From Macrostomum lignano (taxonomy: Eukaryota): 64,000 nt of DNA. The position numbers and the translations under genes are program-made. Positions 9,598-62,949 of the stretch are shown one piece after another. Positions within the stretch are counted from its first letter, which is position 1; each line of letters opens with the position of its first letter. Under the pieces are notes generated by a model, which saw nothing but the letters and a program-made list of their open reading frames with translations, did not search any database and had not been told where the DNA came from. The stretch lies in the NCBI GenBank assembly GCA_002269645.1, contig NIVC01001503.1, positions 62,001 to 126,000 of the forward strand, given 5' to 3'.

Positions 9598-10464
9598 CAG
9601 TTAGTTAGTTAGTTAGCTACTCACAGTCCCAACCGGCCACCTCTGCAGCTCGCCATCCAGCACGGCTCCCGCCTGCTGTTCGTCAACCTCAACCGGAAGC
9701 CACCAGCCTCCGGCCTGGTGCCCTCGGCGTCCAGGGCGAACTCTACGCCGGCTGGAAATTCTGATCGTCGCCAACAGCGGCGCGGTGTCGGCGGCGGCGG
9801 GGACGCTGGCGGCTCCCGCTGCTACGAGGACCTGCCGATGCAGCCAACTGGAGCCTCAGCCTCCGCCATCACATCTCCGGGCTATTCGCTACACGCCGGC
9901 AACTCATCGCCGCACTACGCGCCCTCCTACCATGGCCGGGCGGCGGCGGCGGCGGCGGCGGCGGCGGCATCGCCGTCAGATCGTCGACGACCGGTTAACG
10001 ATGCCGCTGGGACGTCGAGATCTGGAGGAGGCGGCGGCGGAGGAGGTGCTGGTTTTCAAGAGTTCGATGATGTACTGGCTCAGTGCCTGCACAGGCAGCA
10101 GAGTAGGGTGCAGCATCAACACAACCAGCACCAGCACCAGCAGCACCAGCTGCTCTCATTCCCCAGCGGGGAAGATCTGATCTTCCCAGGCGGGATGCTG
10201 GACGCGGCCACGAGGCGGCGCATCAACATGCTGACCAAAGACGTGCAGGACATTGTGAAGGCGCTGCGCTACATTCAGAAGCTGCACGAGAACCGGGAGA
10301 AGGTCAATAAGGTGGTGCAGGAGTGGCGCTCCGTGGCACTGGTCTTGGACCGATTGTTCTTCCTAATCTACGTTCTCACCATCATGCTCTCCATCATCTT
10401 TTTCTTCCCTAAGTCCGGCAACGAGGTTAATCCGGGCGTCATCCCAGCAAACTTCACAGCCTGA
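1019..10464 (+). CDS. Cys-loop ligand-gated ion channel, nicotinic acetylcholine receptor alpha-type subunit, probably anion-selective (ACh-gated chloride channel). 5' exons lie upstream of the window. Exons: 1019-1128, 3204-3377, 5514-5794, 6301-6387, 7632-7750, 9649-10464.
   Basis: All six exons have AG/GT boundaries with matching phases (1587 nt, 528 aa + stop). Motifs read directly: [11 protein letters not shown]...[11 protein letters not shown] (loop A), Cys-loop [23 protein letters not shown] (loop B), YPCCPEPY (loop C vicinal Cys, alpha-type), TM1-TM3, long low-complexity intracellular loop, and TM4 [17 protein letters not shown]. Confidence 0.96.
1959..2030. repeat. (GA)n microsatellite in nAChR intron
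   Basis: Perfect AG dinucleotide run. Confidence 0.97.
2578..3180. repeat. About 14-bp minisatellite (CCTCACAACCCAAG / CCTCACAACCCATT variants) ending just before the 3204 exon
   Basis: Visible tandem units; the source of the spurious 267-aa ORF. Confidence 0.93.
3481..4012. repeat. 32-bp minisatellite TGAGTGACTAGGTGTTCTCAGAGCTAATGTCC, about 16.5 near-identical copies
   Basis: Direct inspection. Confidence 0.96.
4771..5455. repeat. 35-bp minisatellite GATCCAGCCAAGAGACAGTGAGAATAGATTGAAGA, about 19 copies
   Basis: Direct inspection; ends about 60 bp before the 5514 acceptor. Confidence 0.95.
5910..6295. repeat. 16-bp minisatellite CCCTACATATCCCATT abutting the 6301 acceptor
   Basis: Direct inspection. 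Confidence 0.95.
7395..7611 (+). mobile_element. tRNA-derived CORE-SINE, copy 1 (tail shortened)
   Basis: A-box TAGCCTAGTGG and B-box-like GGCTCGATTC. Central GTGTCCTTGAGCAAGACACTTAAC...CAGTTCACCCAGCTGTAAAATGGG resembles the MIR CORE domain as I recall it. Homologous to copies at 20443 and 31046. Confidence 0.88.
7975..8250. repeat. 16-bp degenerate minisatellite CTCGAAAGTTCACAA(A/G)
   Basis: Direct inspection. Confidence 0.9.
8908..9616. repeat. (TTAG)n tetranucleotide array with TTTG/TCAG variants, ending about 30 bp before the last nAChR exon
   Basis: Direct inspection. Confidence 0.97.
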
Positions 10465-16900: not shown

Positions 16901-19357
16901 CAATCCAGGTGTCTTAATTGGAGTTGAATTGCAACAATCCACGTGTCTTAATTGGAGTTGAAATGCAACAATCCAGGTGTCCTTTTTGGAGTTGAATTGC
17001 AACAATCCACGTGTCTTAATTGGAGTTGAATTGCAACAATCCACGTGTCTTAATTGAAGTTGAAATGCAACAATCCACGTGTCTTAATTGGAGTTGAATT
17101 GCAACAATCCAGGTGTCTTAATTGGAGTTGAATTGCAACAATCCAGGTGTCTTATTGGAGTTGAATTGCAACAATCCACGTGTCTTAATTGGAGTTGAAA
17201 TGCAACAATCCACGTGTCTTAATTGGAGTTGAATTGCAACAATCCACGTGTCTTAATTGGAGTTGAATTGCAACAATCCAGGTGTCTTAATTGAAGTTGA
17301 AATGCAACAATCCACGTGTCTTAATTGAAGTTGAAATGCAACAATCCACGTGTCTTATTTGGAGTTGAATTGCAACAATCCAGGTGTCTTAATTGGAGTT
17401 GAAATGCAACAATCCACGTGTCTTAATTGAAGTTGAAATGCAACAATCCACGTGTCTTAATTGAAGTTGAAATGCAACAATCCAGGTGTCTTATTTGAGT
17501 TGAATTGCAACAATCCAGGTGTCTTAATTGGAGTTGAATTGCAACAATCCAGGTGTCTTAATTGGAGTTGAAATGCAACAATCCACGTGTCTTATTGGAG
17601 TTGAATTGCAACAATCCACGTGTCTTAATTGGAGTTAAATGCAACAATCCAGGTGTCTTATTGGAGTTGAATTGCAACAATCCACGTGTCTTAATTGGAG
17701 TTGAATGCAACAATCCAGGTGTCTTAATTGAGTTGAATTGCAACAATCCAGGTGTCTTAATTGGAGTTGAATTGCAACAATCCACGTGTCTTAATTGGAG
17801 TTGAAATGCAACAATCCAGGTGTCTTTTTGGAGTTGAATTGCAACAATCCACGTGTCTTAATTGGAGTTGAATTGCAACAATCCACGTGTCTTAATTGAG
17901 TTGAAATGCAACAATCCACGTGTCTTAATTGGAGTTGAATTGCAACAATCCAGGTGTCTTAATTGGAGTTGAATTGCAACAATCCAGGTGTCTTATTTGG
18001 AGTTGAATTGCAACAATCCACGTGTCTTAATTGGAGTTGAAATGCAACAATCCAGGTGTCTTAATTGGAGTTGAATTGCAACAATCCACGTGTCTTAATT
18101 GGAGTTGAATTGCAACAATCCACGTGTCTTAATTGAAGTTGAAATGCAACAATCCACGTGTCTTAATTGAAGTTGAAATGCAACAATCCACGTGTCTTAA
18201 TTGGAGTTGAAATGCAACAATCCACGTGTCTTAATTGGAGTTGAATTGCAACAATCCACGTGTCTTAATTGGAGTTGAATTGCAACAATCCAGGTGTCTT
18301 AATTGGAGTTGAATTGCAACAATCCAGGTGTCTTATTGGAGTTGAATTGCAACAATCCAGGTGTCTTAATTGGAGTTGAATTGCAACAATCCAGGTGTCT
18401 TAATTGGAGTTGAAATGCAACAATCCAGGTGTCTTAATTGGAGTTGAAATGCAACAATCCACGTGTCTTAATTGGAGTTGAATTGCAACAATCCAGGTGT
18501 CTTAATTGGAGTTGAATTGCAACAATCCAGGTGTCTTATTTGGAGTTGAATTGCAACAATCCACGTGTCTTAATTGGAGTTGAATTGCAACAATCCAGGT
18601 GTCTTAATTGGAGTTGAATTGCAACAATCCAGGTGTCTTAATTGGAGTTGAATTGCAACAATCCAGGTGTCTTAATTGGAGTTGAAATGCAACAATCCAC
18701 GAGTCTTAATTGGAGTTGAATTGCAACAATCCAGGAGTCTTATTTGGAGTTGAATTGCAACAATCCACGTGTCTTAATTGGAGTTGAATTGCAACAATCC
18801 AGGTGTCTTAATTCGAGTTGAATTGCAACAATCCAGGTGTCTTAATTCGAGTTGAATTGCAACAATCCAGGTGTCTTAATTGGAGTTGAATGCAACAATC
18901 CACGGTCTTAATTGGAGTTGAATTGCAACAATCCACGTGTCTTAATTGGAGTTGAATTGCAACAATCCAGGTGTCTTAATTGGAGTTGAATTGCAACAAT
19001 CCAGGTGTCTTAATTGGAGTTGAATTGCAACAATCCAGGTGTCCTAATGGGGGTTGAATTGCAACAATCCAGGTGTCCTAGTTGGAGTTGAATTGCAACA
19101 ATCCAGGTGTCCCAATGGGGGTTGAATTGCAACAATCCAGGTGTCCTAGTTGGAGTTGAATTGCAACAATCCAGGTGCCCCAATTGGGGTCTAATTGCAA
19201 CAATCCAGGTGTCCCAATTGGGGTCTAATTGCAACAATCCAGATGTCCCAATTGGAGTTGAATTGCAACAATCCAGGTGTCCCAATTGGGGTCTAATTGC
19301 AACAATCCAGGTGTCCCAATTGGGGTCTAATTGCAACAATCCAGGTGTCCTAGTTGG
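13975..19357. repeat. 34-bp satellite CCA(C/G)GTGTCTTAATTG(G/A)AGTTGAA(T/A)TGCAACAAT, about 158 copies over 5.4 kb
   Basis: Period measured (14051 to 14085). There is no spacer between units, and the right edge diverges. Confidence 0.98.
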
Positions 19358-20442
19358 AGTTGAATTGCTCGTGCAGCCCTCCACAAATCCGCTACATGTG
19401 CCGGCTTTCCAACCTTCTTCATTTATTTCGACTTTCTATCTTCGCCCCCGTCTCTACGTGTATAAATAGTTTCCATAAGGCTGCCAACCCGCCAGCGAAC
19501 ATGGGACTAATCTGATTTACCTCAACTGGGCCGGGCCAGACTCGAAAGGGATCCGTAATTATTCATGCGCATCCAGCTGCACCGCCGCCCAGCCTCCTTC
19601 CTCCACCAGGGCCAGCAAGTGAATCCGAGCTCTTCCCGCTGGGGACTGCCTGTCATTGTTTTGTGCGTAGCTGGCTAAACTGAAAAAATGCGGTAATTGC
19701 TACTGATAGTATAAAGAAAGTCAAAGCTATCTTCTAGTACATGTAGCTCCGTATTGATGCGGAAAAAACTGCCGTATAACTGGAGGGCTGAGCAGGCGGC
19801 TGGCTAGGGTGAGCCGCAGATAGGGACATGGGATGTGTGGCGCTGCAGAAAGGATAAAGGGATGAGGAATTGCAGGAAGACGAGCTCCAGACACACCTAG
19901 CTTGCGTTCAGCACTTCCGCAGCCTCCCATCCCCAGATTCCCATCCGTTCCAAGTCTTTTACCCACTCTTCCTAGAGCTCTTCCTCTTCCTAGCCGGCAG
20001 TTCCCCTCCTCTACGTTCCCGTGCGCGATGTTTTGTGGCGCATCCACGGCCGCGGCAGACCGGCCATTGATCCCAACGGCGTGTTCTCCCCTCCCTGTGC
20101 GTCTCCCAGCTTCAGCCCGCAGATGGCGAGCCCAGCTGCCAGGCCGATCCGGGGGGGGGGGGGGGGGAGCATCGGACCCAGGGCTCTGGAGGCTCAGGGG
20201 AGAAGGATGCGGAGAGAAGTGGGAGAGAAAAGCCGCCTGAAATATTTATGCCGGACTCAGCGTAGAGAGGCGCGGCCGCATCCCTAATATCCTCCCAAAT
20301 AACCTTTCCGCTACTACCAGGACGGCTCATGTATCCGTCTTTACTATCTCGCTTGCAAAAATGATAGTCTAATCATTTTAGTACTCTCGAATATGTCTTT
20401 TAGAGTTTTTTCCAGAACTTTGTGGTCGGAATTTGTATTGTC

Positions 20443-28400: not shown

Positions 28401-30662
28401 CAGCAAGAAGAAGTTCATCGAGGTGTACTCCGGCTTCTTCCCAGACGGCAATGCCGAGGAGTTCTGCACCCACGTGTTCCGCACATTCGACAAAGACAAC
28501 TCTGGCAAGATTGACTTTAAAGAATTCCTGTTGGCCATCAACATCACTTCTGGCGGCAAGCCCCAGGAGAAGCTGGAGTGGGCCTTCCAGATGTACGACA
28601 TTGACGGCAACGGCAGCATTGAGCGGTCTGAGATGGTCGAGATCATCAAGGTGAGGCTTTTTTAGCACACAGCGCCACAAGGAGAATAGCATGGCGCCAC
28701 AAGAAAAATAGCATGGCGCCACAAGGAGAATAACATGGCGCCACAAAGAAGAATAGCATGGCGCCACAAAGAGAATAGCATGGCGCCACAAGGAGAATAG
28801 CATGAAACCACAAAAAGAATAGCATAGCGCCATAAGAAGAATAGCATGGCGCCACAAGGAGAATAGCATGGCGCCACAAGGAGAATAGCATGGCGCCACA
28901 AAGAAGAATAGCATGGCGCCACAAGGAGTGTAGCACATGGCGCTGAAAAGACCCTACCACAAGCGCCTATCAAGACTCCCGCAAGACAAAATAAGCAATG
29001 AAGCTGTCACTCGGATGCAGGCCAGGCCGCTCACTGCCGCACAGTTTGTACAGATTCCATAGAAACGCTCACCAACAGACCACAAAGCAGTCGGCGCGTG
29101 TTTCTGCATCGCGGGCCAACACAAGCCATAAAAGACTCAGAGAAACAGACTGCTGGGATAATTCGGGAGCTAACGGGGCGCAATCAGTGAGGCATGCCAG
29201 CTGCCTGGCAGGCGGGCTTGAGCAGGTGTTGGGAGTTTAATCCCCGAAAATAATCCGGCCTCTTAGGTACGCGCCGGCTGTCAGAGCTTATGCGGGACTG
29301 GCTGACAGGCTGACTGCAGGCGGGCATCTTTCGAAGCCCAGAGCCAGAAGGTACAAGCGGGGATGAGCAAGGAATGCATGCAAGCAGAATCGATTCGTCA
29401 GACAGCCCCAGAATCCTTCAGTTTCAATCAGCTTCATCGGCTTCCTTTTCTTTCCAATCCAAAATTCGTACCGAGCTCAAGCGGTCCTGGCAACGGGTCT
29501 GAGTACTCGCAGCGTGGGGGATTAGCCGCCTCTTCGCCTTCTCTTTCTCTCTCTCTCTCTCTCTCTCGACGGTGCAGCGAAATCGGCTCAGCTCTGCACA
29601 AGTTGGGATGCAATTAAATTTGAGCACGCCAGAGTCTTTGAGCACGCTAGCTAGTAGAGGCATGCAAGAATGAGGGATTGAGAGAGCAAAAGGTGTCGTA
29701 TGTATGAAGCACTGACATACTGAAAAGCTTGAACAGCAACCATGTGCTCCAGCCATCCCATTGCCATCCCATTGCCATCCCATTGCCATCCCATTGCCAT
29801 CTCATCCCAGCGCTCAGTATCCCAACATCCCAGTGTTCAACATCCCAGTGCTCAGCATCCCAGTGCTCAGCATCCCAGTGCTCAGCATCCCAGTGCTCAG
29901 CATCCCAGTGCTCAGCATCCCAGTGCTCAGCATCCTAGTGCTCAGCATCCCAGTGCTCAGCATCCCAGTGCTCAGCATCCCAGTGCTCAGCATCTCAGTG
30001 CTCAGCATCCCAGTGCTCAGCATCCCAGTGCTCAGCATCCCAGTGCTCAGCATCCCAGTGCTCAGCATCCCAGTGCTCAGCATCCCAGTGCTCAGCATCC
30101 CAGTGCTCAGCATCCCAGTGCTCAGCATCCCAGTGCCCAGCATTCTAGCAATCCCAGTGCCCAGCATTGTAGCAATCCCAGTGCCCAGCATTGTAGCAAT
30201 CCCAGTGCCCAGCATTGTAGCAATCCCAGTGCCCAGCATTCTAGCAATCCCAGTGCTCAGCATCCTAGTATCCCAGTGCTCAGCATCCCAGTGCCCAGCA
30301 TTCTAGCAATCCCAGTGCTCAGCATCCCAGTGCTCAGAATCCCAGTGCTCAGAATCCCAGTGCCCAGCATTCTAGCAATCCCAGTGCCCAGCATCTTACT
30401 GTCCCATGCAGTTGAGTACTGGGGGACTCGAATCCTGCCTACAACCCCGAACCCGAACCGGCAATCTCTGCAGGCAATCTACAGCATGCTGGGCGCAGAC
30501 GAGTCCAACGTAGACATGAGCCCGGAGGCTCGTACCGAGGAGATCTTCGACAAGATGGACGACAACGGCGACGGCGTGTTGTGCCGCGAGGAGTTCATGA
30601 AGGGCTGCATGGCGGACAAGCAGCTCTACTCCATGCTGCTGGCGGACGAGCCCGCCGAGTGA
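25494..30662 (+). CDS. ncs-2: Neuronal calcium sensor (recoverin/NCS family), ncs-2-like, 191 aa. Exons: 25494-25607, 28378-28650, 30474-30662.
   Basis: Three phase-0 exons with GT-AG introns. N-terminal MGNSIG (myristoylation-type Gly2), [23 protein letters not shown] (inactive EF1), EF2 [14 protein letters not shown]3 [14 protein letters not shown]4 [12 protein letters not shown]. Closely resembles C. elegans NCS-2 as I recall it. Confidence 0.95.
25790..26720. repeat. 39/40-bp minisatellite CAGCTGGCGCTCCGCGCCCCACCACACTCCCAGATCCCTT in ncs-2 intron 1
   Basis: Direct inspection. Confidence 0.95.
27552..28290. repeat. 22-bp minisatellite GATTCTCCCCTCATTCCCGGTT in ncs-2 intron 1
   Basis: Direct inspection. 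Confidence 0.95.
28670..28925. repeat. About 22-bp minisatellite GAATAGCATGGCGCCACAAGGA starting about 20 bp after the exon 2 donor
   Basis: Direct inspection. Confidence 0.92.
29750..30395. repeat. 11-bp (CATCCCATTGC) then 15-bp (CATCCCAGTGCTCAG) minisatellite in ncs-2 intron 2
   Basis: Direct inspection; accounts for the QHPSA repeats in the 306-aa ORF. Confidence 0.94.
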
Positions 30663-31045
30663 TCAGCCAGCCGCCAGCCCCTTGTCTCCACGAACTTCGA
30701 GCCCCAGCATCCCCAGCTTCAGCCGGGCTCCAGCTCTGATAAGCTGCTTTTCCCTGCGACGTATCCTAACTGAAATATTTATTTTTACTGTTCTGGATAG
30801 CTGACTGGATATCGACTGAAGCCTGTTTGAATTGCAATTGCCGTCTCCACCCAGTCTGTGTACTTTTTGTGTCCTCTTTGTCTCCATTTCTTCCTTTTAT
30901 TTTAAATCTTTCTCTGAAGGTTTTTCAAACTTCTTATCACTCTGGATTAGTAAATTGGATTTGTCTTCGCAGTTATAGCTATATTCGATAGTACGCAAGA
31001 AAGGATGGGAACGGTTGCGGGTCGTCCCTGTATTCCGTTTTGAGG

Positions 31046-31307
31046 GGGGTTGTAGCCCAGTGGTCAGAGCGTCGGACTCACGACTTGAAGGTCATGGGTT
31101 CGATTCCCGAATCCCACTGGAGCAATTTGTGTCCTTGAGCAAGACACTTAACTCTGCATTGCTTCAGTTTACCCAGCTGTAAAATGGGTGCCAGCATTAG
31201 CTGGGGTAATTGAGGGTGTGTGGCGACCCCCCAGTCCTTGGACTGAACAGCCGTACGCAGCCTTCAGATGCGCCGCGCAATGGCTGCGGCTGAGCTGTCG
31301 GTTGCAC
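31046..31307 (+). mobile_element. tRNA-derived CORE-SINE, copy 3 (most complete)
   Basis: A-box TAGCCCAGTGG, T-arm GGGTTCGATTCCC, CORE-like centre, and the same tail as copy 2. Confidence 0.9.
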
Positions 31308-40938: not shown

Positions 40939-43239
40939 TTAATCATGTTCAAACTCTTTGAACAATGGCACAGCGCAATAACAGTCTTTGCTGAACGATT
41001 CTACTGGAACAGCGATGCAGGGTCGATCGACCTCTGAAAAATTAACTATACGTTCGCGTCTGGCCGATCTGGGCGCATTAGACAGGGATATCAATACAAA
41101 ATTGAATGTCGAAGACTTTTTGAACATGGATTCCAGCAATGCTTTCCAATTAAGTAAATCGATGGGGAAAGTTGCTGCTGGTACTCGTAAAACAAAATCA
41201 AACAGCGAACCAATGGGATCCAAAATTTGCACTCGAATAGTATTAGGCTCGAGGAACTCTGCAATAGTGCAGATTTCGCCGGACTTCAATTGGCAAAGAT
41301 GGTTAGAATTTTTCGACGCACAAGCTGAGCTTGTCGAGAAAAAATGTCCATTAAAATAAGCAAGTGAGTTTCGAAGAATACCATGTGGCCTGGATGGCTC
41401 TAAAGATATAGAGTTAACTGCATCCACTACAATAGAGTCCTTAACACAAGAAAAGTAGTGATGTAGCAACTTTTGAAACAAAAACTTGCGAACAAGCTGT
41501 GGGCCAAATGACACAGTTCCGCATAAGAACTTTTTGAACATGCCAATGGAGCTCTCAAATGCGAACATAGAATAATTAAATACAGGTCCGTACAATTCGT
41601 ACTGTTCAGCCATATGCAAAAGCAGGTGGAAATTAAGGCGGAGTACTTTCGGTCCGAATATTTGCTGAGCATTGGAGATAAAAGCTTTGCATAGCTTTTC
41701 GATATCAGTCTTATTTGATTGGGGGCTATACAACATGTGATAAATAAGAACTAAATTAGTTAACAGCAGTTTCAATGGAAAATGCGAAATTCTCTGCAAA
41801 AACGTAGGAAGAAGAAAGTATAGCGCAAAGTTTTTAAAATGCTTTGCTTTCCAATCTGAAAAGCCTTTAAAATTTGTGTTGATTGTGATGCTAGAAGGAG
41901 TTATAGATTGACGAATACAATTAGATATGAAATCCATGCAATTAGCTGAGCAAAAATACAACTCGCGCCTGTTTGCAGGTAATGACAGCTCTTCTAGTAG
42001 ATACTTGGTGTGGCCTTCGAAAAAGCAGTGTAAACTGTCAATAGGATTGCAGCTGGGAAACGGAACATAGTCTAACAAGCAACTGCGCATCTTTACGCCA
42101 AAAACAGGCCGATTTCGAATTTGTGCGAGCCGACAGTGTTCAAGATGGGAAGATGGGTTTCTCAAAGGAAACAAGTAGCCTTCACCATAGCGGAAGATCC
42201 AGTTTTTACCTTTCTCGGATACTTTAAAGCTCTCACCTGGGTGCAAGCACCTAGGACAGCTAAACGCACCATTGTACTGGTGAATGCAGAAGAGCTTAGC
42301 AAGAGCGGGCAAGTCACAAACAAAGAGTGTGTAATGGACATGAACGGTGTATTCCGAGAATATAAACTGTTTTGGCAAATTGTTCATAATTTCAGACAGA
42401 AAAGACTGGAAATGCGGGACTGCCTTCGATGAAACAAGAGCAATTAGAATTAAATTTGCAAAGCGTTGACGGATGTAAACAGGAAGGTTTAGAAGTTGAG
42501 CCTGAAATGGCCAAAAGCTACTCTGAACAGATTCAAAAAAATTGGCGCCATCAGCTGAGATTAGAAGATGCAAGTGAAGCGACTTGCCAGAAGATAGGCT
42601 TAAGCCTTGTTCTTTAACTATTTTGGAATTCAAAACGTCTGTGTTTTTATCCTTTTGCAATTCTTGCTCATACTGCAGAATAGTTGAAGTGTGGCTGCTT
42701 AAGATAGTCCGCAGCTGTGGAACAATATTGAGCTGTGTCACAGCAACCTTTGACTTTGGGGAATGAACCTGACACTGGCTTTTGCATTCTGGGCAAAAGC
42801 CAAATTCAGACACGTCACTATCATCAAGAGGGCAAGTATCTTGAATCAATGATTTGAGCAACTTGACGCTATTTGGAAGAGCTAGAGAATCTCTACTAAA
42901 AATAGAAAGTAGCTTCAGGAGTCTATCAAGAGCAGCCTCTGAAACTCCGGAAGTAATTGCCCACTGAAAAATCAGAGCCGCCTGCACACTGGGATCTGAG
43001 ATGGAAGCCAAATTCGCTAAGCTATCTGAACTCTCCTCAAGCACAGGCACAGCATTGTTTTCACCAATAAAAGTTTCCACAGCGTCAGGACAGCTGTGCG
43101 AGTGCGTTACACCGGCTTCGCTTGAAATTGAACTCCTATTACTTGTAGAAAAACTATTTGAGGGAGAAGAAATCGCCTGACAAGAGTAGGCTGAGTAATT
43201 AGTAGAAAGAGAGTGCTCAGATTCTGATTTACTAGACAT
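40939..43239 (-). CDS. EnSpm/CACTA-type DDE transposase, 766 aa, intronless and uninterrupted
   Basis: Motifs ISADGANFF (D), FVCDLPA (D), YNGAFSCPRC (CxxC), IDSLHCFFEG, WKAKHFK, NFHLLLH (HxxxH), YGPVFNYSMFAFES (E). Lies between TIRs. Confidence 0.93.
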   Translation of the reverse strand: MSSKSESEHSLSTNYSAYSCQAISSPSNSFSTSNRSSISSEAGVTHSHSCPDAVETFIGENNAVPVLEESSDSLANLASISDPSVQAALIFQWAITSGVSEAALDRLLKLLSIFSRDSLALPNSVKLLKSLIQDTCPLDDSDVSEFGFCPECKSQCQVHSPKSKVAVTQLNIVPQLRTILSSHTSTILQYEQELQKDKNTDVLNSKIVKEQGLSLSSGKSLHLHLLISADGANFFESVQSSFWPFQAQLLNLPVYIRQRFANLILIALVSSKAVPHFQSFLSEIMNNLPKQFIFSEYTVHVHYTLFVCDLPALAKLFCIHQYNGAFSCPRCLHPGESFKVSEKGKNWIFRYGEGYLFPLRNPSSHLEHCRLAQIRNRPVFGVKMRSCLLDYVPFPSCNPIDSLHCFFEGHTKYLLEELSLPANRRELYFCSANCMDFISNCIRQSITPSSITINTNFKGFSDWKAKHFKNFALYFLLPTFLQRISHFPLKLLLTNLVLIYHMLYSPQSNKTDIEKLCKAFISNAQQIFGPKVLRLNFHLLLHMAEQYELYGPVFNYSMFAFESSIGMFKKFLCGTVSFGPQLVRKFLFQKLLHHYFSCVKDSIVVDAVNSISLEPSRPHGILRNSLAYFNGHFFSTSSACASKNSNHLCQLKSGEICTIAEFLEPNTIRVQILDPIGSLFDFVLRVPAATFPIDLLNWKALLESMFKKSSTFNFVLISLSNAPRSARRERIVNFSEVDRPCIAVPVESFSKDCYCAVPLFKEFEHD

Positions 43240-52755: not shown

Positions 52756-53679
52756 CCTTGAAGATGACAGCGTGCATTTTCATTCACTAGTAAATTTTTT
52801 ATGAATTGGTATTATTTTTACCCTAGGGTGAGCTTCTACTACTCTATGCTTCACTATGTTAGCACTCTGATTTTTTGTAAGGCTTCAGCCTTGATTACTA
52901 GTACTGGAACCTATTTTCTAATAGCTATGGATCTGGCAGTCTTCTGCAGGCAGTTATTTACTAATGAAGTCTTTAAACATTTGAAGTATCTTGTTTTGAA
53001 TCTCATTATTTCATTTTGATCTTATTTTGAACAAAAGCTCAATATCAACCACCTATTAAAAAGTAAAACATTTTTTCTATATTATACCCATAAATTGCAC
53101 TATTGGAATACCATTGCCAGATCCATAGCCATTAAAAATGGGCTCTGGTGCCAGAACTCTAGCCATTGCCAACACTAACCCCCGCTACTTATATGCACAC
53201 CTATACCCAGTGTTGGGCACTGTTAATGAAAATCTTAACTTTTATTAATGGCAAAAGCATTAGTGTCAAAACAAAAAATCTTAACTTATTAACTCTTAAT
53301 TTTGTTAAGTTAACTGAAAGTTAACTGATAATTATTAATAAGCATTACTCCATTAAAGTTAACATAGAAAATACAGAAATCTGCACTTTCCCAAATAGAC
53401 TTCATAATGCACTGTCTTTGCTTGTCCATCTTTTTAGTAAAACACAGAGGTTACCTAAGCAATTTACAAGCTAAAAAGTAATACATCATAATTTCAAAAA
53501 TTTATATGTATAATACTACTAAAAGTAAGCATATGGTAAAAGAAGTAACTTTTTTATTTGGAATTTGAAAGCTAATTAGTTAATAAATAAAATATGAAGG
53601 AAATGCAAAAGTGCAAAAGTTTGTAAGAAAAATATTACACGGCTTTTATACCAAATTGTTGGTTTTTGCATGAATAAGA

Positions 53680-54109
53680 ATGCCCAAACGAAGCTGCCCA
53701 TTTGCTGACAATGCTAATCAGCTCAAAGTGCGCGTTTCCCAGAAGCTTGTGGACACGGGCGTGAATGCCGAGCAAAACATGAGTGCCGTTTATGGTGAGT
53801 GCATTTTAGAGTTACGAATTTTGATTTCACGCTACTGACTGCCTACTAACAGTAGCCAACACGACATTCTTCCGTTCCGTCCTTCTCTTTCAAGATCGCA
53901 CTTTGAAACTGTTGAATAATGGCGCTCGCAAATTCTACAACCCGTCAGCTGAGGACAGCAGCAGACTGGAGCTGCAGGCTCGCGACAGCGTCGAGTCGTT
54001 GGAGGTCAGCGAGACTGCAGAATCCAATGCTGACGTTGGCGCTGCAGCAAACCAATCTAAACTTGAACAGTTTGGCTTTGTGCGTTCACCAACTAAATCT
54101 GCGCACTAA
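53680..54109 (+). CDS. SIVA1: SIVA1 apoptosis regulator homolog; the visible part is 109 aa and lacks the C-terminal Cys-rich zinc fingers. Exons: 53680-53794, 53895-54109.
   Basis: [31 protein letters not shown]...DRTLKLLNNGA matches the SIVA1 N-terminus ([32 protein letters not shown]...EKTKRLLFLGA, from memory). A 100-bp phase-1 GT-AG intron separates the exons. Confidence 0.86.
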
Positions 54110-54289
54110 TTATCTGCTGCACATTATATTGCACTGTACATTTGTCTATTTTGTGGCACAGTTCCCTTTTTTAATACTGTGCTATATGTTTTCATTGCTA
54201 TCTATGTATGCGCAAGGCAGTTTTTGCACCATTTTTTTCTGCGACTGAGCCACGGAGTTTCAAAGAAAGAAAACTGCTGCGTGATGATA

Positions 54290-54890
54290 AATCAGCAGGC
54301 TAGTCATTAGTGTGTGATGACCAATCAGCAGGCTGGTCATTAGTGTGTGGTGACCAATCAGCAGGCTGGTCATTAGTGTGTGATGACCAATCAGCAGGCT
54401 GGTCATTAGTGTGTGGTGACCAATCAGCAGGCTGGTCATTAGTGTGTGATGACCAATCAGCAGGCTGGTCATTAGTGTGTGATGACCAATCAGCAGGCTG
54501 GTCATTAGTGTGTGGTGACCAATCAGCAGGCTGGTCATTAGTGTGTGATGACCAATCAGCAGGCTGGTCATTAGTGTGTGGTGACCAATCAGCAGGCTGG
54601 TCATTAGTGTGTGATGACCAATCAGCAGGCTGGTCATTAGTGTGTGGTGACCAATCAGCAGGCTGGTCATTAGTGTGTGATGACCAATCAGCAGGCTGGT
54701 CATTAGTGTGTGGTGACCAATCAGCAGGCTGGTCATTAGTGTGTGATGAGTGATGACCAATCGGCGAGCTGGTCTTTAGTGTGTGATGACCAATCAGTAA
54801 GCTTGGTCATTAGTGTCTTATGACCAATCAGTAAGCTTGGTCATTAGTGTCTTATGACCAATCAGTAAGCTTGGTCATTAGTCGGTAATG
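54290..54890. repeat. 33-bp minisatellite G(A/G)TGACCAATCAGCAGGCTGGTCATTAGTGTGT, mostly as a 66-bp A/G dimer
   Basis: Direct inspection; each unit has a CCAAT box and a TGACC...GGTCA stem. Confidence 0.95.
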
Positions 54891-55717
54891 ACCAATTAGT
54901 GGCACATTGATAAATAAGTGAATAAGTACTTAGACTGATGTTAAGCTACTAATTTTAGCTACTTTGAGTAGTCTATAAATGATCGTATTCTGTTTCATTT
55001 ATACTTTCCAGTTGTCGCTGACTTAAATTGATGTTATTTTTCTGTCCATTTTAGCCCATTTGTCTTTTCTCAGTATTGTTATTATTATTATTTCTTGTAT
55101 TCATAGCATCTGGCATAAAAATTGGCGTTAAAAATTATATCTCTGTCGAATGCTGCATATTTTCTATTATACCTGAAATACTACTTTCGTCTTCGGTAAA
55201 AGTAGTGTCTAATGTTTGGTGTTTCTTTGCTCTTTTTCTAATATATGAATAAGAATAACAGACACAATAAAGAACTTATGATCATTTGTATTCAGATTAA
55301 AATGACCTTTATAGATAGGACAGTAAGTACTTTGATACAAGACTACTGTTTTTTAACCATGGTAGAAACTTATAGTTTAGTTACTCATAGAAAAACTGAA
55401 TAGATCATGATTTCCCTATGACTGTACCATATCTATCCCGTTTCCAGTATTCCATTGAGTATTCCATTGCTATATTACATGAGTAGAGCATGAGTACTCT
55501 ATGACTACATCTTGCCTAAATCTAGGTCACAGCTAACCTATGACCAACTTGGACCTAGGTCATGGCTAACTTATGACCAAATTGGCCCTAAGTCATGGCT
55601 ATCATATGACTAGATGATGACTAGGTCATCGGCTCATGTCATACCTATAACTACCTGCTTAATTCCTGACCATTTAGCCACTGCCCACAAGCAAACAGAA
55701 CTGCCTGTCTGTTGCAG

Positions 55718-56311
55718 ACCGCCAGTCAGTGGCGCCGTATAGCGGTCAGTGCTCGCAGTTGCGGGCACCTCCTATTCAATCGCTACCTGTTGCTAACCAA
55801 CTGCGCAATCTGCGGCCTCAGCTCCTCGTGCGGCGATCTGATCAGCCAGAAACTGGAGTGCCGCAACAGGAAGCAATCGCTATTGTCAACAGTGAATTGG
55901 AAGCGCAATTTAACTATAGGATCGTGCGGCGTGCTGCTGGGCCCGCTCACTCACTATTGGTACCTGTTCTTAGAGAGACGCTTCCTGGGCCGGACTGCAC
56001 GCGCCCTGGTGTACAAAGTTGCCGCCGATGCGCTGCTGTTCTCGCCCGTGTACATCACTCTGTACGTTGTTAGCCTCGGCTTGATGCGCGGAGTTGGCAG
56101 GGAGGCGATTAAAGCCGATCTGTGGGAGGCCGGCCTAGAGATCTACAAGTACGAGGCCACCATATGGAGCGCTGCTCAAGCCGTTAATTTCTATTTTTTG
56201 CCAATCAGATACCGGGTTGCATTTGACAGCAGCGTGTCGCTTGCATTCGACACTTTTTACGCCAATCAGTACAACAGTGCGCCTAGCAACTCACCTGGCG
56301 ACAAAGCTTAA
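55718..56311 (+). CDS. MPV17L2: Mpv17/PMP22 family protein, MPV17L2-like (197 aa from the splice acceptor; no genomic ATG at the N-terminus)
   Basis: WRR...HLLFNRYLLLTN..CG...GDLISQ, GPLTHYWYLFLE, KVAADALLFSP, IWSAAQAVNFYFLPIRYRV. Phase-0 acceptor TTGCAG ends at 55717, and an in-frame TGA lies upstream at 55667. Confidence 0.9.
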   Translation, partial: TASQWRRIAVSARSCGHLLFNRYLLLTNCAICGLSSSCGDLISQKLECRNRKQSLLSTVNWKRNLTIGSCGVLLGPLTHYWYLFLERRFLGRTARALVYKVAADALLFSPVYITLYVVSLGLMRGVGREAIKADLWEAGLEIYKYEATIWSAAQAVNFYFLPIRYRVAFDSSVSLAFDTFYANQYNSAPSNSPGDKA

Positions 56312-56869
56312 TTAAACCTTACCGAGCCTTTACCATTTGCCTTTAAAATTGAACTCAGATTTGTAGAATATTGTGAAGGTTGAATTTCTGACAAAATACG
56401 GTCCAAAATATGCTACTTCCCACCACTTGTAGTGAGTAGTACTAATAGCGTTTCGTGCTATTAATATTTCTGACTGTTTTCAAATGTTAAAAAATTGAAC
56501 ATGTTAACAACAATTTTTAGGTCTCATATATTTATTTCGATTCTAAATTCTGTTGCTTTAATTTCGATATCAATATTGGCAAAGAATGATGAGTAATAGT
56601 TTTGATTTGATTGAAATTAGTTTGACATGCACCTGTGTTATTGTTGGTTCATTTTGTATCTGATTAAGCTTATGCAGTGATTAATGCCACGGCACATGTG
56701 AATTTCTGACTGGCTTGCTTGAACCAACCCATCGCAAATACATGAATGAAGTTACAGTGCAATATCAAGCTATGCACACCTGTTTTCTAGCTGAATCTGT
56801 AAAAATGATTTAATTTTCAATTTGACTTCTTACTTTTGCCTCCAACCACCACAGATACTACAATAATTA

Positions 56870-57402
56870 GATGGGCCACTCATCACATTTGCGTGTAAGC
56901 TACTTTCAGTTCAGTAGTAAGTTAAACAGAAGAATTTTAGAATTTTTTTTCATTTATTGGCTCCACAGGTACTCCGAGTAGAATAACTAGATGGGCCACT
57001 CAGGCATATATACTTAGCAAAACAGCTTTCTACTTTCAGTTCAGTAGCAAAGAAGAATACATAAGCTATATTATAAAAATAAAGACAGCTAAAATAACTT
57101 TGATAAGTTTAGAAGCCCTAGCTTGCAGGCGTAAACAGCTTGCTAATTGGTTCAACAGTAATGTACATTAGCCAGTCCAATGAAATGTACATGGCAGCTT
57201 TAGGCTGGAATTCCGAGAAAGGCAATAAAATTGAGGCGGGGTGGGGCGTAGTGTGCAAAGGCGCGGTTGGAGGGTTTAGGCTGGTGGGTAGAGCCAATAA
57301 ATAAGCCTTGGCTTTAAAAACAAAAAATACATTAAAATGCTTCTCTTTAACTTACTACTGAACTGAAGGTAGCTTACACGCAAATAAGCTAAGTGGCCCA
57401 TT
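56870..57402. mobile_element. Foldback/MITE-like element of about 530 bp with inverted arms of about 70 bp
   Basis: 56887-56926 (ATTTGCGTGTAAGCTACTTTCAGTTCAGTAGTAAGTTAAA) is the inverted complement of 57346-57385 with one mismatch, and weaker similarity extends on both sides. No TSD found. Confidence 0.6.
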
Positions 57403-58186
57403 TACCTCATCCTTGGCCTCGAACCCCGAACTTCTGCGGTTGGAACTCTGCTTTGGATTTGGAAGGCTGGGAAACTAGAGAAACTCTATCAACTAGGACT
57501 GTTTATGTCTATATGATAGCGAATATTTGTCGATCAAAACTTTTATGCAAGTTGACAAACTTGAAAATTTTAAAAAGCAGCTATGTAAGTACGCACTTTT
57601 TTAATTCGACCAGTTCTTTATCAGATTTAGCCCTATGCTTTCCACCGATAAGAATAAGTTCTCAACTGGTTATGCATGAAAGGCGATAGCCTGTAGATAG
57701 TTCGTAGAGAGCCATTTTTTAGAAATTCGTTCGAACCTGTGTCTTTTACCCCCTTCTCATTGGGCAAAGCCAGTCTTATCCAATCGGTTGTCCGTTGCGT
57801 GTATTAGCTGTGTGCAGCTAGAACTTCAGTGTATTACATATATAGGCTCGTTCTTACAGCGTGCTGATATTTTTCAATTAATTGATAGTTTTCAATCAAC
57901 TAACTCAAATTATAAAGTCAAAGTCCCTGATTATAATCTCGGAACATCTGAATGGTGAGGCAGTGTTATATCTTATTGTTATGAATACAGTACGTGCATA
58001 AGTCATACCGGTATTTCTTAAAACCGTCGTGATATTCGAGGGTCGAGCGTCGCCACCGGGGGGGGGGCAGGGGGACATGCCCCCAGTAAAAGCTATATTG
58101 GGGAACATGCCAATGCTTTTTTCCCTCCGCCCCACCGTGACCCGTTATGGAAATCAATATTTTTTCGAAAATATAACGCCTTCGGC

Positions 58187-59625
58187 GCCAAAATGACTGC
58201 ATGCCTGCTGTGCCAAAATGAGTGCCTGCCTGCGGTGCCAAAATGAGTGCCTGCCTGCGGTGCCAAAATGAGTGCCTGCCTGCTGTGCCAAAATGAGTGC
58301 CTGCCTGCGGTGCCAAAATGAGTGCCTGCCTGCATCGCCAAAATGAGTGCCTGCCTGCGGTGCCAAAATGAGTGCCTGCCTGCATCGCCTAAATGAGTGC
58401 CTGCCTGCGGTGCCAAAATGAGTGCCTGCCTGCATCGCCAAAATGAGTGCCTGCCTGCATCGCCAAAATGAGTGCCTGCCTGCGGTGCCAAAATGAGTGC
58501 CTGCCTGCATCGCCAAAATGAGTGCCTGCCTGCATCGCCAAAATGAGTGCCTGCCTGCTGTGCCAAAATGAGTGCCTGCCTGCTGTGCCAAAATGAGTGC
58601 CTGCCTGCATCGCCAAAATGAGTGCCTGCCTGCTGTGCCAAAATGACTGCATGCCTGCTGTGCCAAAATGAGTGCCTGCCTGCATCGCCAAAATGAGTGC
58701 CTGCCTGCTGTGCCAAAATGACTGCATGCCTGCTGTGCCAAAATGAGTGCCTGCCTGCGGTGCCAAAATGAGTGCCTGCCTGCATCGCCAAAATGAGTGC
58801 CTGCCTGCGGTGCCAAAATGAGTGCCTGCCTGCGGTGCCAAAATGAGTGCCTGCCTGCTGTGCCAAAATGACTGCATGCCTGCTGTGCCAAAATGAGTGC
58901 CTGCCTGCTGTGCCAAAATGAGTGCCTGCCTGCGGTGCCAAAATGAGTGCCTGCCTGCATCGCCAAAATGAGTGCCTGCCTGCGGTGCCAAAATGAGTGC
59001 CTGCCTGCTGTGCCAAAATGAGTGCCTGCCTGCATCGCCAAAATGAGTGCCTGCCTGCGGTGCCAAAATGAGTGCCTGCCTGCGGTGCCAAAATGAGTGC
59101 CTGCCTGCTGTGCCAAAATGAGTGCCTGCCTGCATCGCCAAAATGAGTGCCTGCCTGCGGTGCCAAAATGAGTGCCTGCCTGCGGTGCCAAAATGAGTGC
59201 CTGCCTGCGGTGCCAAAATGAGTGCCTGCCTGCGGTGCCAAAATGAGTGCCTGCCTGCGGTGCCAAAATGAGTGCCTGCCTGCGGTGCCAAAATGAGTGC
59301 CTGCCTGCGGTGCCAAAATGAGTGCCTGCCTGCTGTGCCAAAATGAGTGCATGCCTGCTGTGCCAAAATGAGTGCCTGCCTGCGGTGCCAAAATGAGTGC
59401 CTGCCTGCGGTGCCAAAATGAGTGCCTGCCTGCGGTGCCAAAATGAGTGCCTGCCTGCTGTGCCAAAATGAGTGCATGCCTGCTGTGCCAAAATGAGTGC
59501 CTGCCTGCGGTGCCAAAATGAGTGCCTGCCTGCTGTGCCAAAATGAGTGCATGCCTGCTGTGCCAAAATGAGTGCCTGCCTGCGGTGCCAAAATGAGTGC
59601 CTGCCTGCGGTGCCAAAATGAGTCC
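58187..59625. repeat. 25-bp minisatellite GCCAAAATGAGTGCCTGCCT(GCGGT/GCTGT/GCATC), about 58 copies
   Basis: Direct inspection; the source of the 443-507 aa minus-strand ORFs. Confidence 0.96.
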
Positions 59626-59803
59626 CGATCATTTTGAGTCCTCATCATGAGTCCCGATGTACATGTAGTAGTAGGTAGTATTCCGTAATTCATGGATGTT
59701 CCGATGGTGATTATGGCCAAATTCTATCCCGAGTTGCGCTGAGATCTCGTCCTATCAGCCTTCGCGAAATTCAACTGTTTTTTTCATTCAATCACGAGCG
59801 CAG

Positions 59804-62217
59804 GACCCCGACGATGAGCCGATAGTAAAGCTGGAACAGCAGACCTACATTGTGTACAAGTCTCGCTGGTTCATTCTGACCATCTACGGCCTGTTGATCA
59901 CATTTCAAGGCTCACTGTGGAACACCTGGGGCCCGCTGCACGACAACATGGAGCTTGCCTACAATTGGGACTCCGTCACGTTCGGCCTGTTGCCGTTCTG
60001 GGGCCCATTCTGCTACGTCCTCTCCTTCCTGCCCTGGACTTGGCTCATGAACTCCAAGGGCCTTCGGCTGCCAGTGCTGCTCAGCGCCGGGCTCGTGCTG
60101 GCCGGCTGTCTGGCTAAACTGCCCGCTCCTTTCGTCTCTGACGATCTGTTTCGCATTCTGTGCCACGTGTGCGGCTTTCTCAACGGCCTGGCCGCGCCAG
60201 CCCTGTTCACCACTCCGCCAATGCTGGCCGCCATCTGGTTTCCTAGAAATGAGAGAGTGACAGCCACCGCTATTGGCGGATCTTGCCAGGGCCTGGCTAT
60301 TGCCGCTTCTTTTATCATTGGTTTGTTCTTGCTTTTTTAGTTTTTGTGCTTTATGAATTGAGACTTCGTCACTCCAGTTGTAGGAAGTGAGGCTCTTCAG
60401 AGGTAATTTGTCACTCCAGTTGTAGGAAGTGAGGCTCTTCAGAGGTAATTTGTCACTCCAGTTGTAGGAAGTGAGGCTCTTCAGAGGTAATTTGTCACTC
60501 CAGTTGTAGGAAGTGAGGCTCTTCAGAGGTAATTTGTCACTCCAGTTGTAGGAAGTGAGGCTCTTCAGAGGTAATTTGTCACTCCAGTTGTAGGAAGTGA
60601 GGCTCTTCAGAGGTAATTTGTCACTCCAGTTGTAGGAAGTGAGGCTCTTCAGAGGTAATTTGTCACTCCAGTTGTAGGAAGTGAGGCTCTTCAGAGGTAA
60701 TTTGTCACTCCAGTTGTAGGAAGTGAGGCTCTTCAGAGGTAATTTGTCACTCCAGTTGTAGGAAGTGAGGCTCTTCAGAGGTAATTTGTCACTCCAGTTG
60801 TAGGAAGTGAGGCTCTTCAGAGGTAATTTGTCACTCCAGTTGTAGGAAGTGAGGCTCTTCAGAGGTAATTTGTCACTCCAGTTGTAGGAAGTGAGGCTCT
60901 TCAGAGGTAATTTGTCACTCCAGTTGTAGGAAGTGAGGCTCTTCAGAGGTAATTTGTCACTCCAGTTGTAGGAAGTGAGGCTCCGAGGTTGTCACTCCAG
61001 TTGTAGGAAGTGAGGCTCTTCAGAGGTAATTTGTCACTCCAGTTGTAGGAAGTGAGGCTCTTCAGAGGTAATTTGTCACTCCAGCTGTAGGAAATGAGGC
61101 TCCGAGGTTTTCACTCCAGTTGTAGGAAGTGAGGCTCTTCAGAGGTAATTTGTCACTCCAGCTGTAGGAAGTGAGGCTCCGAGGTTTTCACTCCAGCTTT
61201 AAGTTTTCGACTCAATTTTGAGATCGTCACTTCTGTCCTTCAGTGTCCATCGTATCTATAACCAACATTCTTCCAGGACCGCTCTTTGTGCCAGAAGTGA
61301 GCAACAGCACTCTGCGAGAAGCAAATTCAACGGATATTATCATAGAGTGAGCGAATGTACAATTATGAACACCTTCAAATTTACAGAGCAGCAATTGTGA
61401 CAAACTCTTTTACTTGTGCACAATATCCAGAAACATTAAGAGCGAAGTTTACGTGCTGAACTACTCGCAGCTGGGCATCGCTCTTGCAATATTCGCTGTC
61501 ATTCTCGCCTACTTTCCTAACCGACCACCAACGCCGCCTGCCGTGTCGTGCGAAGTCGAACGCGTTAACCTTGCCGCCGGTCTGAAATCGCTGTCAATTA
61601 ACACCTGGCTGGTGGTGATGGCCTACGGCCTGCCGCTGGGCGTCTCCGCCGGCTTCAGTGCCGCCTTCGACGTCAACGTCAGCCAATACGGCATTGGCCA
61701 GACTCAGGCCGGTTGGATGGGCTTCGTCGCCGTCCTGACTGGCACCGTCGTGAGCCTGTTGGCCGCCAGACTCATCGACTGGTTTCCAAACGCATCTATG
61801 AAATGGTTCAACATCGTGTTCTTGGGCGTTGCGACCCTGTGCTACGTGTGGTTCACGCTCATATTCGACAAGGTACTGCCCGGAGACACCGCTTCGATCT
61901 ACGTGGCAAACGTGCTGGCCAACACCGCACTCTATTCTTCTCTGCCGCTTTTCTACGAGATGGCCTGCGAGTCCGCATTCCCCATAGCCGAGGAGGTGCC
62001 CGCGATGCTCATCACCAGCGTCAACTGCTTCTTTGCCAGCGTGTTTCTCGCCCTGTTTTTCTTTCCCCAAATTGGAACGCTCTGGATGAACTACGTCATG
62101 ACTGGGGCCTGCGCCACCGCCGTGCCGCTTCTAGTCCTGTTCCGGGAGGTTCACAACAGGCGGAATCTGGACCTAACGGCGCAGGTCGGGGCTCAATCCG
62201 ACGGTCGTCTGCAGTAA
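59804..62217 (+). CDS. SLC49A4: MFS transporter SLC49A4/DIRC2-like (457 aa from the acceptor; no upstream in-frame ATG). Exons: 59804-60320, 61277-61346, 61431-62217.
   Basis: YKSRWFIL...FQGSLWNTWGPL...WGP...NGLAAP...WFPRNERVTATAI...IGPLFVP...YFPNRPPTPP match DIRC2-family motifs. Exon phases 1 and 2 fit GT-AG introns. AATAAA at 62297. Confidence 0.9.
60368..61198. repeat. 42-bp minisatellite TCACTCCAGTTGTAGGAAGTGAGGCTCTTCAGAGGTAATTTG, about 20 copies, filling SLC49A4 intron 1
   Basis: Direct inspection. Confidence 0.96.
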
Positions 62218-62949
62218 CGCCTAGCCTCCTGCAAATTGTTCTCGAATATCAGACATCGAAAATGACCCTAATTTGCTTAACGAAATCTCTGGTTTCAATA
62301 AAGCATTGTATGGTTTTTCAGTGTACCAGAGCGGCAAACAAGGTGTCACCCATGGGAAGAAATTTACTCAAGGGATGGGATGAGATACAGACTAATATTG
62401 GCTGATGTCATTTTCTCATTCCGGAGCTTCATGTTTTACCAGATTGTTGCCAGAATTTACGAGTAAGCCTCCGTTCTGACACTACTGTACATTATACGAG
62501 CTACATTTAGACACTTCCACATTGATACGAGCTGGTCTGAAAATATTCAGCAAACAAACAATTTAATGCTTAGTCTAGAATATAGCTAAAGCACAAACTC
62601 TAGCTGTTGTCACCTGAGGTAGATTGATACCCTCAATCTCAAGTATAAATTATCCTACCTGGTTAAGACCCCTTCCGTACGCGTGAATTCATGGTTTGAT
62701 TACACCGCAGACCTGCAATTTATACTGTCACAAAAATGGCTATAATTTCTCATACGTGTTGTGTTACGAGCTAAGCTAATTAACTAGTTTTGTTTCTGTT
62801 GAAATTGCCAAGTCATGTACGAGCTACAGCAAAATACATAAAAATCTCCACAAATCACGAGAATTGCAACTTTTTTGCTTGGCATTCAACTTTTGTTTTA
62901 GGGGTGCTTGGCTTTCAAACGTGTTGTCCTGGCGTGCTAGAATATAGTG

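Follow-up and report, generated by a model that had tools for sequence, protein, structure and literature searches.

Probable spliced-leader acceptors and a cis-spliced ATG exon at a SIVA-like, MPV17L2-like and SLC49A4 locus of Macrostomum lignano

The flatworm Macrostomum lignano uses one 35-nt spliced leader (SL), CGGTCTCTTACTGCGAAGACTCAATTTATTGCATG, which ends in ATG. Trans-splicing affects ~30% of its genes, ~15% of all genes have been placed in operons, and 60% of the trans-spliced genes lie outside operons (PMC8629364). Under the operon rule published for this species two genes are neighbours on the same strand, the second one is trans-spliced and the two are <1 kb apart once repeats have been subtracted (PMC8629364); that repeats inflate the intercistronic distances of M. 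lignano is explicit in Ustyantsev & Berezikov 2021 (PMC8629364). All flatworm SLs end in AUG and, in the form in which Cheng et al. 2006 (J Biol Chem) is quoted by PMC12582326 and PMC9851317, this AUG can act as the initiator. Trans-splicing of an outron, i.e. the stretch removed by trans-splicing, gives way to cis-splicing when a donor is placed upstream (Conrad et al. 1993, as quoted in PMC8629364), and flatworm acceptors are often shared by cis- and trans-splicing. We compared with these systems a locus at which a SIVA-like, an MPV17L2-like and an SLC49A4 gene (genes 1, 2 and 3) follow each other on the + strand. It lies in a window of 64,000 nt, the whole stretch of DNA analysed, which corresponds to contig NIVC01001503.1:62001-126000 of assembly GCA_002269645.1 (Mlig_3_7); adding 62,000 to a window coordinate gives the contig coordinate.

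The explanation that best accounts for the locus, to which we assign a probability of roughly two in three, is that it gives rise to three separate mature mRNAs: the SIVA-like and MPV17L2-like mRNAs would be SL trans-spliced and the SLC49A4 mRNA would carry a 5′ exon joined in cis. The features are listed in Table 1. All three genes are already annotated in GenBank and no annotated gene lies between them, in agreement with the initial annotation of the window, which had described three genes on one strand. Paralogous or duplicated copies of the whole locus are present on two further contigs (L002 and L003), both with the order Siva - Mpv17 - MFS. As the window, L002 and L003 copies are 94-100% identical, the common gene order reflects a recent duplication and not long-term conservation.

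For the MPV17L2-like gene the reading frame itself points to a start codon from outside. The open reading frame (ORF) is an exact match to one protein cluster, whose members are the M. lignano GenBank proteins BOX15_Mlig002842g1/g2, both labelled 'partial'. The product matched the Pfam family Mpv17_PMP22 (PF04117) with an E-value of 1.3e-13. A word-indexed protein search returned its own cluster only; relatives emerged from an exhaustive search, in which the best named ones were mollusc 'mpv17-like protein 2' sequences at 38-39% identity, and the product is thus placed in the MPV17L2 subgroup. The acceptor 55717|55718 (ctgttgcag|ACC) opens the frame in phase 0. Inside the ORF a Met appears for the first time at codon 123 of 197, and upstream of the acceptor the frame reaches a stop codon without any ATG. 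The start of the ORF aligns with the extreme N-terminus of the MPV17L2 homologues. Both features expected of an SL-donated start are therefore found at gene 2, namely an SL ending in AUG in the host species and a phase-0 AG acceptor without a usable ATG nearby. Given the terminal AUG of the SL and the phase 0 of the acceptor, the leader would supply the initiator codon that the gene does not have: joined as SL...ATG|ACC GCC, the product would begin with M-T-A-S-Q. An exact-protein look-up for this SL-initiated form (MTASQ...) gave no match.

The GenBank annotation points to the same junction. The coding sequences (CDSs) of the MPV17L2-like gene are 5′-partial in all three copies and start 0, 3 and 6 nt past the junction. 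The gene boundaries for M. lignano in GenBank were set by a pipeline in which transcripts are cut wherever SL-trimmed reads form a peak, and hence a 5′-partial CDS that begins precisely at an AG is what an SL site should look like. Judged from sequence and annotation together, the MPV17L2-like gene almost certainly takes its AUG from the SL, with trans-splicing at 55717|55718 as the step that would provide it. The claim that annotation truncates N-termini at this locus holds for this gene, which GenBank labels 'partial'. Another GenBank CDS of this genome is also 5′-partial and starts right after an AG (cacagag|ACC ACC, at 16602 of L008). This case suggests that SL-donated start codons are common in the annotation.

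A comparison of the copies revealed traces of the SL at two junctions. At the SIVA-like junction L003 reads tttttttcag|AATAAAAATG, a canonical acceptor, whereas the window and L002 read tttttGCATG|AATAAGAATG. At the MPV17L2 acceptor the altered copy is L003 (ctgttCATG|ACC, 9991-9994), whereas the window and L002 have ctgttGCAG|ACC. Each time the altered block turns into the 3′-terminal 4-5 bases of the SL, stops exactly at the junction and abolishes the AG. No other clean substitution block directly adjoins a splice junction in the well-aligned paralogue sequence. We read the TTGCATG directly in front of the annotated SIVA-like transcript start as an SL 'footprint' that marks the trans-splice junction 53672|53673. 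The 7-mer alone is not significant (13 copies in the window compared to 16 expected, the other 12 without gene context); what lends it weight is its position together with the comparison of the paralogues.

According to the assembly paper, Pilon polishing made use of RNA-seq reads mapped with STAR. It is probable that SL-bearing reads with short overhangs overwrote genuine AG acceptors in Mlig_3_7 during this step. The blocks could instead be true genomic differences, either mutated acceptors or the outcome of conversion by reverse-transcribed SL-bearing mRNA. They do exist in the deposited assembly, and genomic relics of the SL are known in other SL-using lineages such as the dinoflagellates. 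However, RNA-seq reads did enter the polishing, and just the 4-5 bases nearest to the junction are altered, which fits short SL overhangs aligned end to end. Furthermore, the SIVA intron is kept and the copies without the AG carry the same annotated transcript start. We consider a genomic origin of the blocks very improbable. Whether artefact or real, the footprints imply SL-bearing mRNA at both the SIVA and the MPV17L2 junction, and thus that the SIVA-like gene is trans-spliced as well. If acceptors were overwritten in this manner, many splice sites of Mlig_3_7 could be corrupted genome-wide, which matters for studies of splice sites and for the design of constructs; overwritten acceptors could likewise point out trans-splice sites when no reads are at hand. 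Neither in the window nor in the loci did we find an SL RNA gene or a stretch of ≥10 nt matching the 3′ end of the SL, and an Rfam scan returned only one tRNA.

In the SIVA-like gene the SL would be added at 53672|53673 and translation would begin at the gene's own ATG, 7 nt past the junction. The partial CDS begins 1 nt past a TTTCAG acceptor in L003, the place at which the window and L002 have TTGCATG. The AUG of the SL is out of frame with the SIVA-like ORF and would give an upstream ORF of 11 codons. On this reading the gene is trans-spliced and preceded by an outron, and its 5′ end at 53673 is not a promoter site, which speaks against the single promoter that had been proposed at SIVA1. 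The product has 109 aa from the ATG and stops at 109 aa in all copies; an exact-protein look-up for it gave no match. It matched the Pfam family Siva (PF05458) with an E-value of 5.7e-13 across profile positions 1-66 of 173 only, i.e. the N-terminal third, and the Cys-rich C-terminal half is absent in every copy. The name SIVA1 is thus borne out as far as the Siva match goes and not for a full SIVA1. As judged from the domain match, the gene 1 product is a Siva N-terminal-domain protein, and its status as a full SIVA1 orthologue is not established. Its UniRef name, 'TFIIS central domain-containing protein', looks like a misnomer.

The SLC49A4 gene has a start codon of its own. The protein matched Pfam MFS_1 with an E-value of 3.2e-18, and the named sequences closest to it are 'solute carrier family 49 member 4 homolog' proteins of oyster, amphioxus and chiton at 32-38% identity and ≥96% query cover. 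Its matches in the PDB are FLVCR1/2 only, and it falls into the SLC49A4/DIRC2 subgroup; Pfam and the best named relatives thus confirm the MPV17L2 and SLC49A4 identities that had been proposed. The acceptor 59803|59804 (gagcgcag|GAC) is in phase 0 and has no in-frame ATG of its own. The GenBank CDS is nevertheless complete, with 458 aa, and starts at 57952 within ...CATCTGAATG|GTGAGG, 1.85 kb upstream of this acceptor. Only one set of GT-AG exons reproduces PAA67179.1 exactly, and it consists of the ATG at 57952 and exons 2, 3 and 4 as given in Table 1. The motif ATG|GTGAGG is kept in 3/3 copies despite lengths of 1.85, 1.70 and 5.67 kb for intron 1, and it is the sole ATGGTRAG in the spacer between genes 2 and 3. 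The leader is free of ATG for 276 nt upstream of 57952, and gaps of that length make up 2 of the 228 ATG-to-ATG gaps in nearby non-coding DNA. A second SLC49A4-like gene, Mlig032072.g1, with a protein identity of 44%, has the same structure (...tatta|ATG|GTGAGT, an intron of 492 nt, ttaccag|GAG), which indicates that the start-codon intron is old and real. In this gene (L004 10001-10495, NIVC01002441.1) the first coding exon is the ATG alone, and TATAAATA lies ~70 nt upstream. No SL footprint was found at 59804 in any of the three copies.

According to the initial annotation, genes 2 and 3 both begin at in-frame acceptors without an ATG, their N-termini are truncated in standard annotation and neither can be translated unless trans-spliced. 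Both acceptors are indeed in phase 0, and the full-length protein of gene 2 does need an ATG from outside. This need does not carry over to gene 3, for which the CDS is complete and starts at 57952; the very finding that had been named as refuting its SL dependence, a cis-spliced ATG exon, is present in the three copies and in the old paralogue. Most likely SLC49A4 does not need the SL for its translation and has its own promoter near 57.8 kb. Its 5′ exon, which ends in ATG, would be cis-spliced to the 59804 acceptor over the 1.85-kb intron filled with minisatellite sequence. A stretch resembling the SL, TCAATTAATTG at 57874-57884 (10/11 positions), was set aside as a chance match, since it is a palindrome and 4 matches were found compared to 2.4 expected.

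As the SLC49A4 donor exon and the SL both end in ATG, the protein would be identical whether its mRNA is spliced in cis or in trans. The ATG-only exon might then be a cis-encoded stand-in for the SL, as the two share the ending AUG|GU and the phase-0 acceptor to which they would be joined; we regard this as unlikely. If true, the presence of the ATG-only exon in the 44%-identical paralogue too would mark the arrangement as old, and such an exon might be a general route for flatworm genes into or out of SL dependence. The ATG-only first exons of the two SLC49A4 paralogues constitute a small testable case of interchange between a cis exon and the SL.

The initial annotation had joined the three genes into one SIVA1-MPV17L2-SLC49A4 operon, i.e. 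one promoter would drive a three-gene precursor that is resolved by the SL, and gene 3 would be trans-spliced at 59804 or upstream of its ATG exon. The genes share one strand, their order is the same in each of the three copies, and the acceptor at 59804, being in phase 0, would be in frame with the ATG of the SL. Candidate acceptors upstream of the ATG exon are found at 57860 (TTACAG) and 57889. Flatworm acceptors serve both kinds of splicing often enough, and some flatworm intercistronic distances amount to kilobases. However, the acceptor at 59804, gcgcag, departs from the trans-splice motif [T/C]TNCAG and lacks a footprint in 3/3 copies. SL addition at 57860 would create an out-of-frame upstream ORF of 39 codons overlapping the start codon, and addition at 57889 would likewise add an upstream ORF. 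Another point against a three-gene precursor is the cis ATG exon, which is annotated and conserved, old paralogue included. We calculated repeat-adjusted spacers by removing tandem repeats (plus the foldback element for genes 2-3), counting from the stop codon and with no RepeatMasker track. The adjusted distance between genes 2 and 3 was 1103 bp up to the ATG exon or 1509 bp up to 59804, both above the 1-kb rule. Downstream trans-splicing, which the rule asks for, is indicated indirectly for gene 2 by the 5′-partial CDSs and the CATG in L003; at gene 3 nothing points to it, and the CDS there is complete and starts on a cis exon. On this evidence a three-gene operon is unlikely, and the part of the proposal that fits the published rule is the pair of genes 1 and 2.

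For this pair the adjusted spacer was 879, 901 and 895 bp in the three copies, which makes it a candidate operon by the published rule. The two genes share a strand, no gene of the opposite strand separates them, and they have the consecutive GenBank accessions PAA67177 and PAA67179. AATAAA at 55266 and ATTAAA at 55296 are the sole canonical poly(A) hexamers between the SIVA stop codon and the MPV17L2 acceptor. They mark a candidate 3′ end of SIVA ~420-450 nt upstream of this acceptor; if they are used, the intercistronic gap between SIVA and MPV17L2 would be ~400 nt. Genes 1 and 2 may be co-transcribed from a promoter upstream of the SIVA outron, and from the sequence we put the chances of this at about even.

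In the absence of any operon each gene would have its own promoter: SIVA and MPV17L2 would be of the outron type, like most C. elegans SL1 genes, and the MPV17L2 promoter would lie in the first spacer. This spacer is 1.6 kb long, AT-rich and contains 18 tandem GACCAATCAG motifs that are similar to the CCAAT box, and the first canonical poly(A) hexamer is found 1.16 kb beyond the SIVA stop. A majority of trans-spliced M. lignano genes, ~60%, are also non-operonic. Against separate promoters, genes 1 and 2 lie within the published distance in 3/3 copies with 879-901 bp of unique sequence, and a SIVA end near 55290-55320 would leave a gap of only ~400 nt. We regard separate promoters for all three genes as possible but less likely than not.

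Several points weigh against the explanation with two SL trans-spliced mRNAs and a cis-spliced third. The use of the SL is inferred from the style of the annotation and from footprints in the assembly. The share of trans-spliced M. lignano genes that are not in operons speaks against co-transcription of genes 1 and 2. The TATA-like box of the candidate SLC49A4 promoter is weak, with one TA unit different in L002. The first exon of SLC49A4 could itself be trans-spliced at 57860 or 57889, which would keep gene 3 in a longer transcription unit, and the acceptor at 59804 could take the SL part of the time, as shared cis/trans acceptors are common in flatworms. Finally, the three copies are so similar that conservation among them tells little about function. 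For the same reason a footprinting of promoters across the three copies was dropped, as an identity of 94-100% is too close to expose them.

The measured spacers, 1608 bp between genes 1 and 2 and 3492 bp between genes 2 and 3, agree with the earlier estimates of about 1.6 and 3.5 kb, and the poly(A)-like signals ATTAAA and AATAAA are at 56311 and 62297 as proposed. As the cis ATG exon lies upstream of it, the 25-bp minisatellite is intronic, and the 3.5-kb spacer really consists of 1.64 kb of intergenic DNA, the 5′ exon and an intron. The spacers had been described as inflated by repeats, and the 33-bp, 25-bp and foldback repeats are all present. Their enrichment is modest, however: the two spacers consist of tandem repeats to 45% and 41%, compared to 29% for the rest of the window and 30.7% for the whole window. 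Since tandem repeats cover 31% of the whole window, the repeat-rich spacers represent background, and the minisatellites count as neutral background in a genome very rich in repeats and not as an intercistronic property. The two array-bearing SLC49A4 introns have a tandem-repeat cover of 78-87%.

Copy numbers vary between the loci. The 33-bp array of the first spacer has 20.4 and 8.5 copies in the two paralogous loci compared to 18.4 in the window, the second 33-bp array (55522-55634) has 13.5-13.7 copies there compared to 3.4, and the 25-bp array has 58, 52 and 211 copies in the three locus copies. The GACCAATCAG in each unit of the first array resembles a CCAAT box. We counted 22 tandem arrays of ≥200 bp in the window; a 34-bp-unit array of 5.4 kb occupies 13981-19368 and a 30-bp array from 62951 runs past the window end. 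No dispersed repeats common to the spacers and the rest of the window were found, and no A-runs that would be poly(A) footprints in one copy were found 3′ of the MPV17L2 and SLC49A4 stop codons. A bacterial promoter/terminator scan, which is not applicable to this organism, returned nothing.

Table 1. Window coordinates of the features of the locus. TRF, Tandem Repeats Finder; MITE, miniature inverted-repeat transposable element.
Feature	Position	Strand	Remarks
TTGCATG, last 7 nt of the M. lignano SL	53666..53672	+	directly 5′ of the annotated SIVA-like transcript start
SIVA-like exon 1	53673..53794	+	BOX15_Mlig015401g1, PAA67177.1, annotated 'partial'; own ATG 53680; donor G|GTGAGT
SIVA-like exon 2	53895..54109	+	ends at TAA stop 54107-54109
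33-bp minisatellite, 18.4 copies	54281..54896	.	GACCAATCAG in each unit; TRF
Poly(A) hexamers AATAAA 55266, ATTAAA 55296	55266..55301	+	positions only; site use inferred
Second 33-bp tandem array, 3.4 copies	55522..55634	.	84 nt upstream of MPV17L2 acceptor; TGACCAA-bearing
TTGCAG acceptor of MPV17L2-like gene	55712..55717	+	fits published trans-splice motif [T/C]TNCAG
MPV17L2-like gene (Mlig002842 family)	55718..56311	+	single coding exon; 5′-partial in GenBank; stop TAA 56309-56311
ATTAAA hexamer	56311..56316	+	overlaps MPV17L2 stop codon
Foldback (MITE-like) element	56868-56955/57317-57404	.	88-nt arms, 84% complementary, 361 nt apart
Candidate SLC49A4 first exon and core promoter	57839..57954	+	TATA-like TATATAGG 57839-57846; CCAAT 57780; ATG 57952-57954
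SLC49A4 intron 1	57955..59803	+	donor GTGAGG, acceptor gcgcag
25-bp minisatellite in SLC49A4 intron 1	58178-59623	.	TRF; tandem repeats = 78% of intron 1
SLC49A4 exon 2	59804..60320	+	BOX15_Mlig023460g1, PAA67179.1
42-bp minisatellite in SLC49A4 intron 2 (60321-61276)	60368..61196	.	
SLC49A4 exon 3	61277..61346	+	
SLC49A4 exon 4	61431..62217	+	ends at stop codon; AATAAA 62297-62302 beyond

Elsewhere in the window, a 766-aa ORF at 40939-43239 (-) matches DUF1258 and weakly DUF4218, and it looks transposase-associated. The identical protein is encoded on at least 8 contigs, and the ORF thus probably belongs to a DNA transposon that is young and was active recently. A gene for a Cys-loop ligand-gated ion channel has exons at 5497-5901 and 9718-10464 (+). 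An ORF with a weak, sub-threshold EF-hand match lies at 29742-30662 (+) and a tRNA-Val(CAC) at 31044-31119 (+).

The biology of the locus is in large part already known, and it is an ordinary case of published mechanisms at an annotated locus and not a new three-gene operon. The initial annotation was right that flatworm-type SL trans-splicing applies, as the species is M. lignano and its SL ends in ATG. An SL-supplied AUG and repeat-inflated operon spacers are no novelty, as both have been published for flatworms and M. lignano. The locus adds little new biology, since SL trans-splicing, SL-donated start codons and repeat-inflated operon spacers have all been reported for the species or the phylum. 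A search of papers and the Grudniewska 2018 supplements for Mlig002842, Mlig015401, Mlig023460 and Mlig008909 gave no matches.

The closest system is the SL and operon system of M. lignano itself (PMC8629364; annotation in Wudarski et al. 2017, PMC5730564), with which the locus shares the species, the 35-nt SL and, at gene 2, the motif [T/C]TNCAG. Genes 1 and 2 resemble the operons described there in being same-strand neighbours separated by <1 kb of spacer once repeats are discounted; gene 3, with its cis 5′ exon, does not fit the published rule. With the SL-AUG case of Cheng et al. 2006, as far as it is reported in later papers, gene 2 has in common a phase-0 acceptor, no ATG of its own and an N-terminus that is complete save for the Met. 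The case of Cheng et al. differs in that it comes from experimental translation assays in Schistosoma mansoni, whereas translation from the SL AUG at gene 2 is predicted. SLC49A4 follows the rule of Conrad et al. 1993 in the form cited above, as its upstream donor ATG|GTGAGG would make the sequence before 59804 an intron and not an outron; it differs from the case cited in that the last three bases of its donor exon are ATG, just as in the SL. An intron separates codons 1 and 2 in each of the two M. lignano SLC49A4-like paralogues. Phase-0 introns right behind the start codon are a general eukaryotic pattern, and the two paralogues conform to it. Unlike in the general pattern, such an intron could, in a species with an SL that ends in AUG, speculatively be what remains of earlier trans-splicing or else offer an alternative to such splicing.

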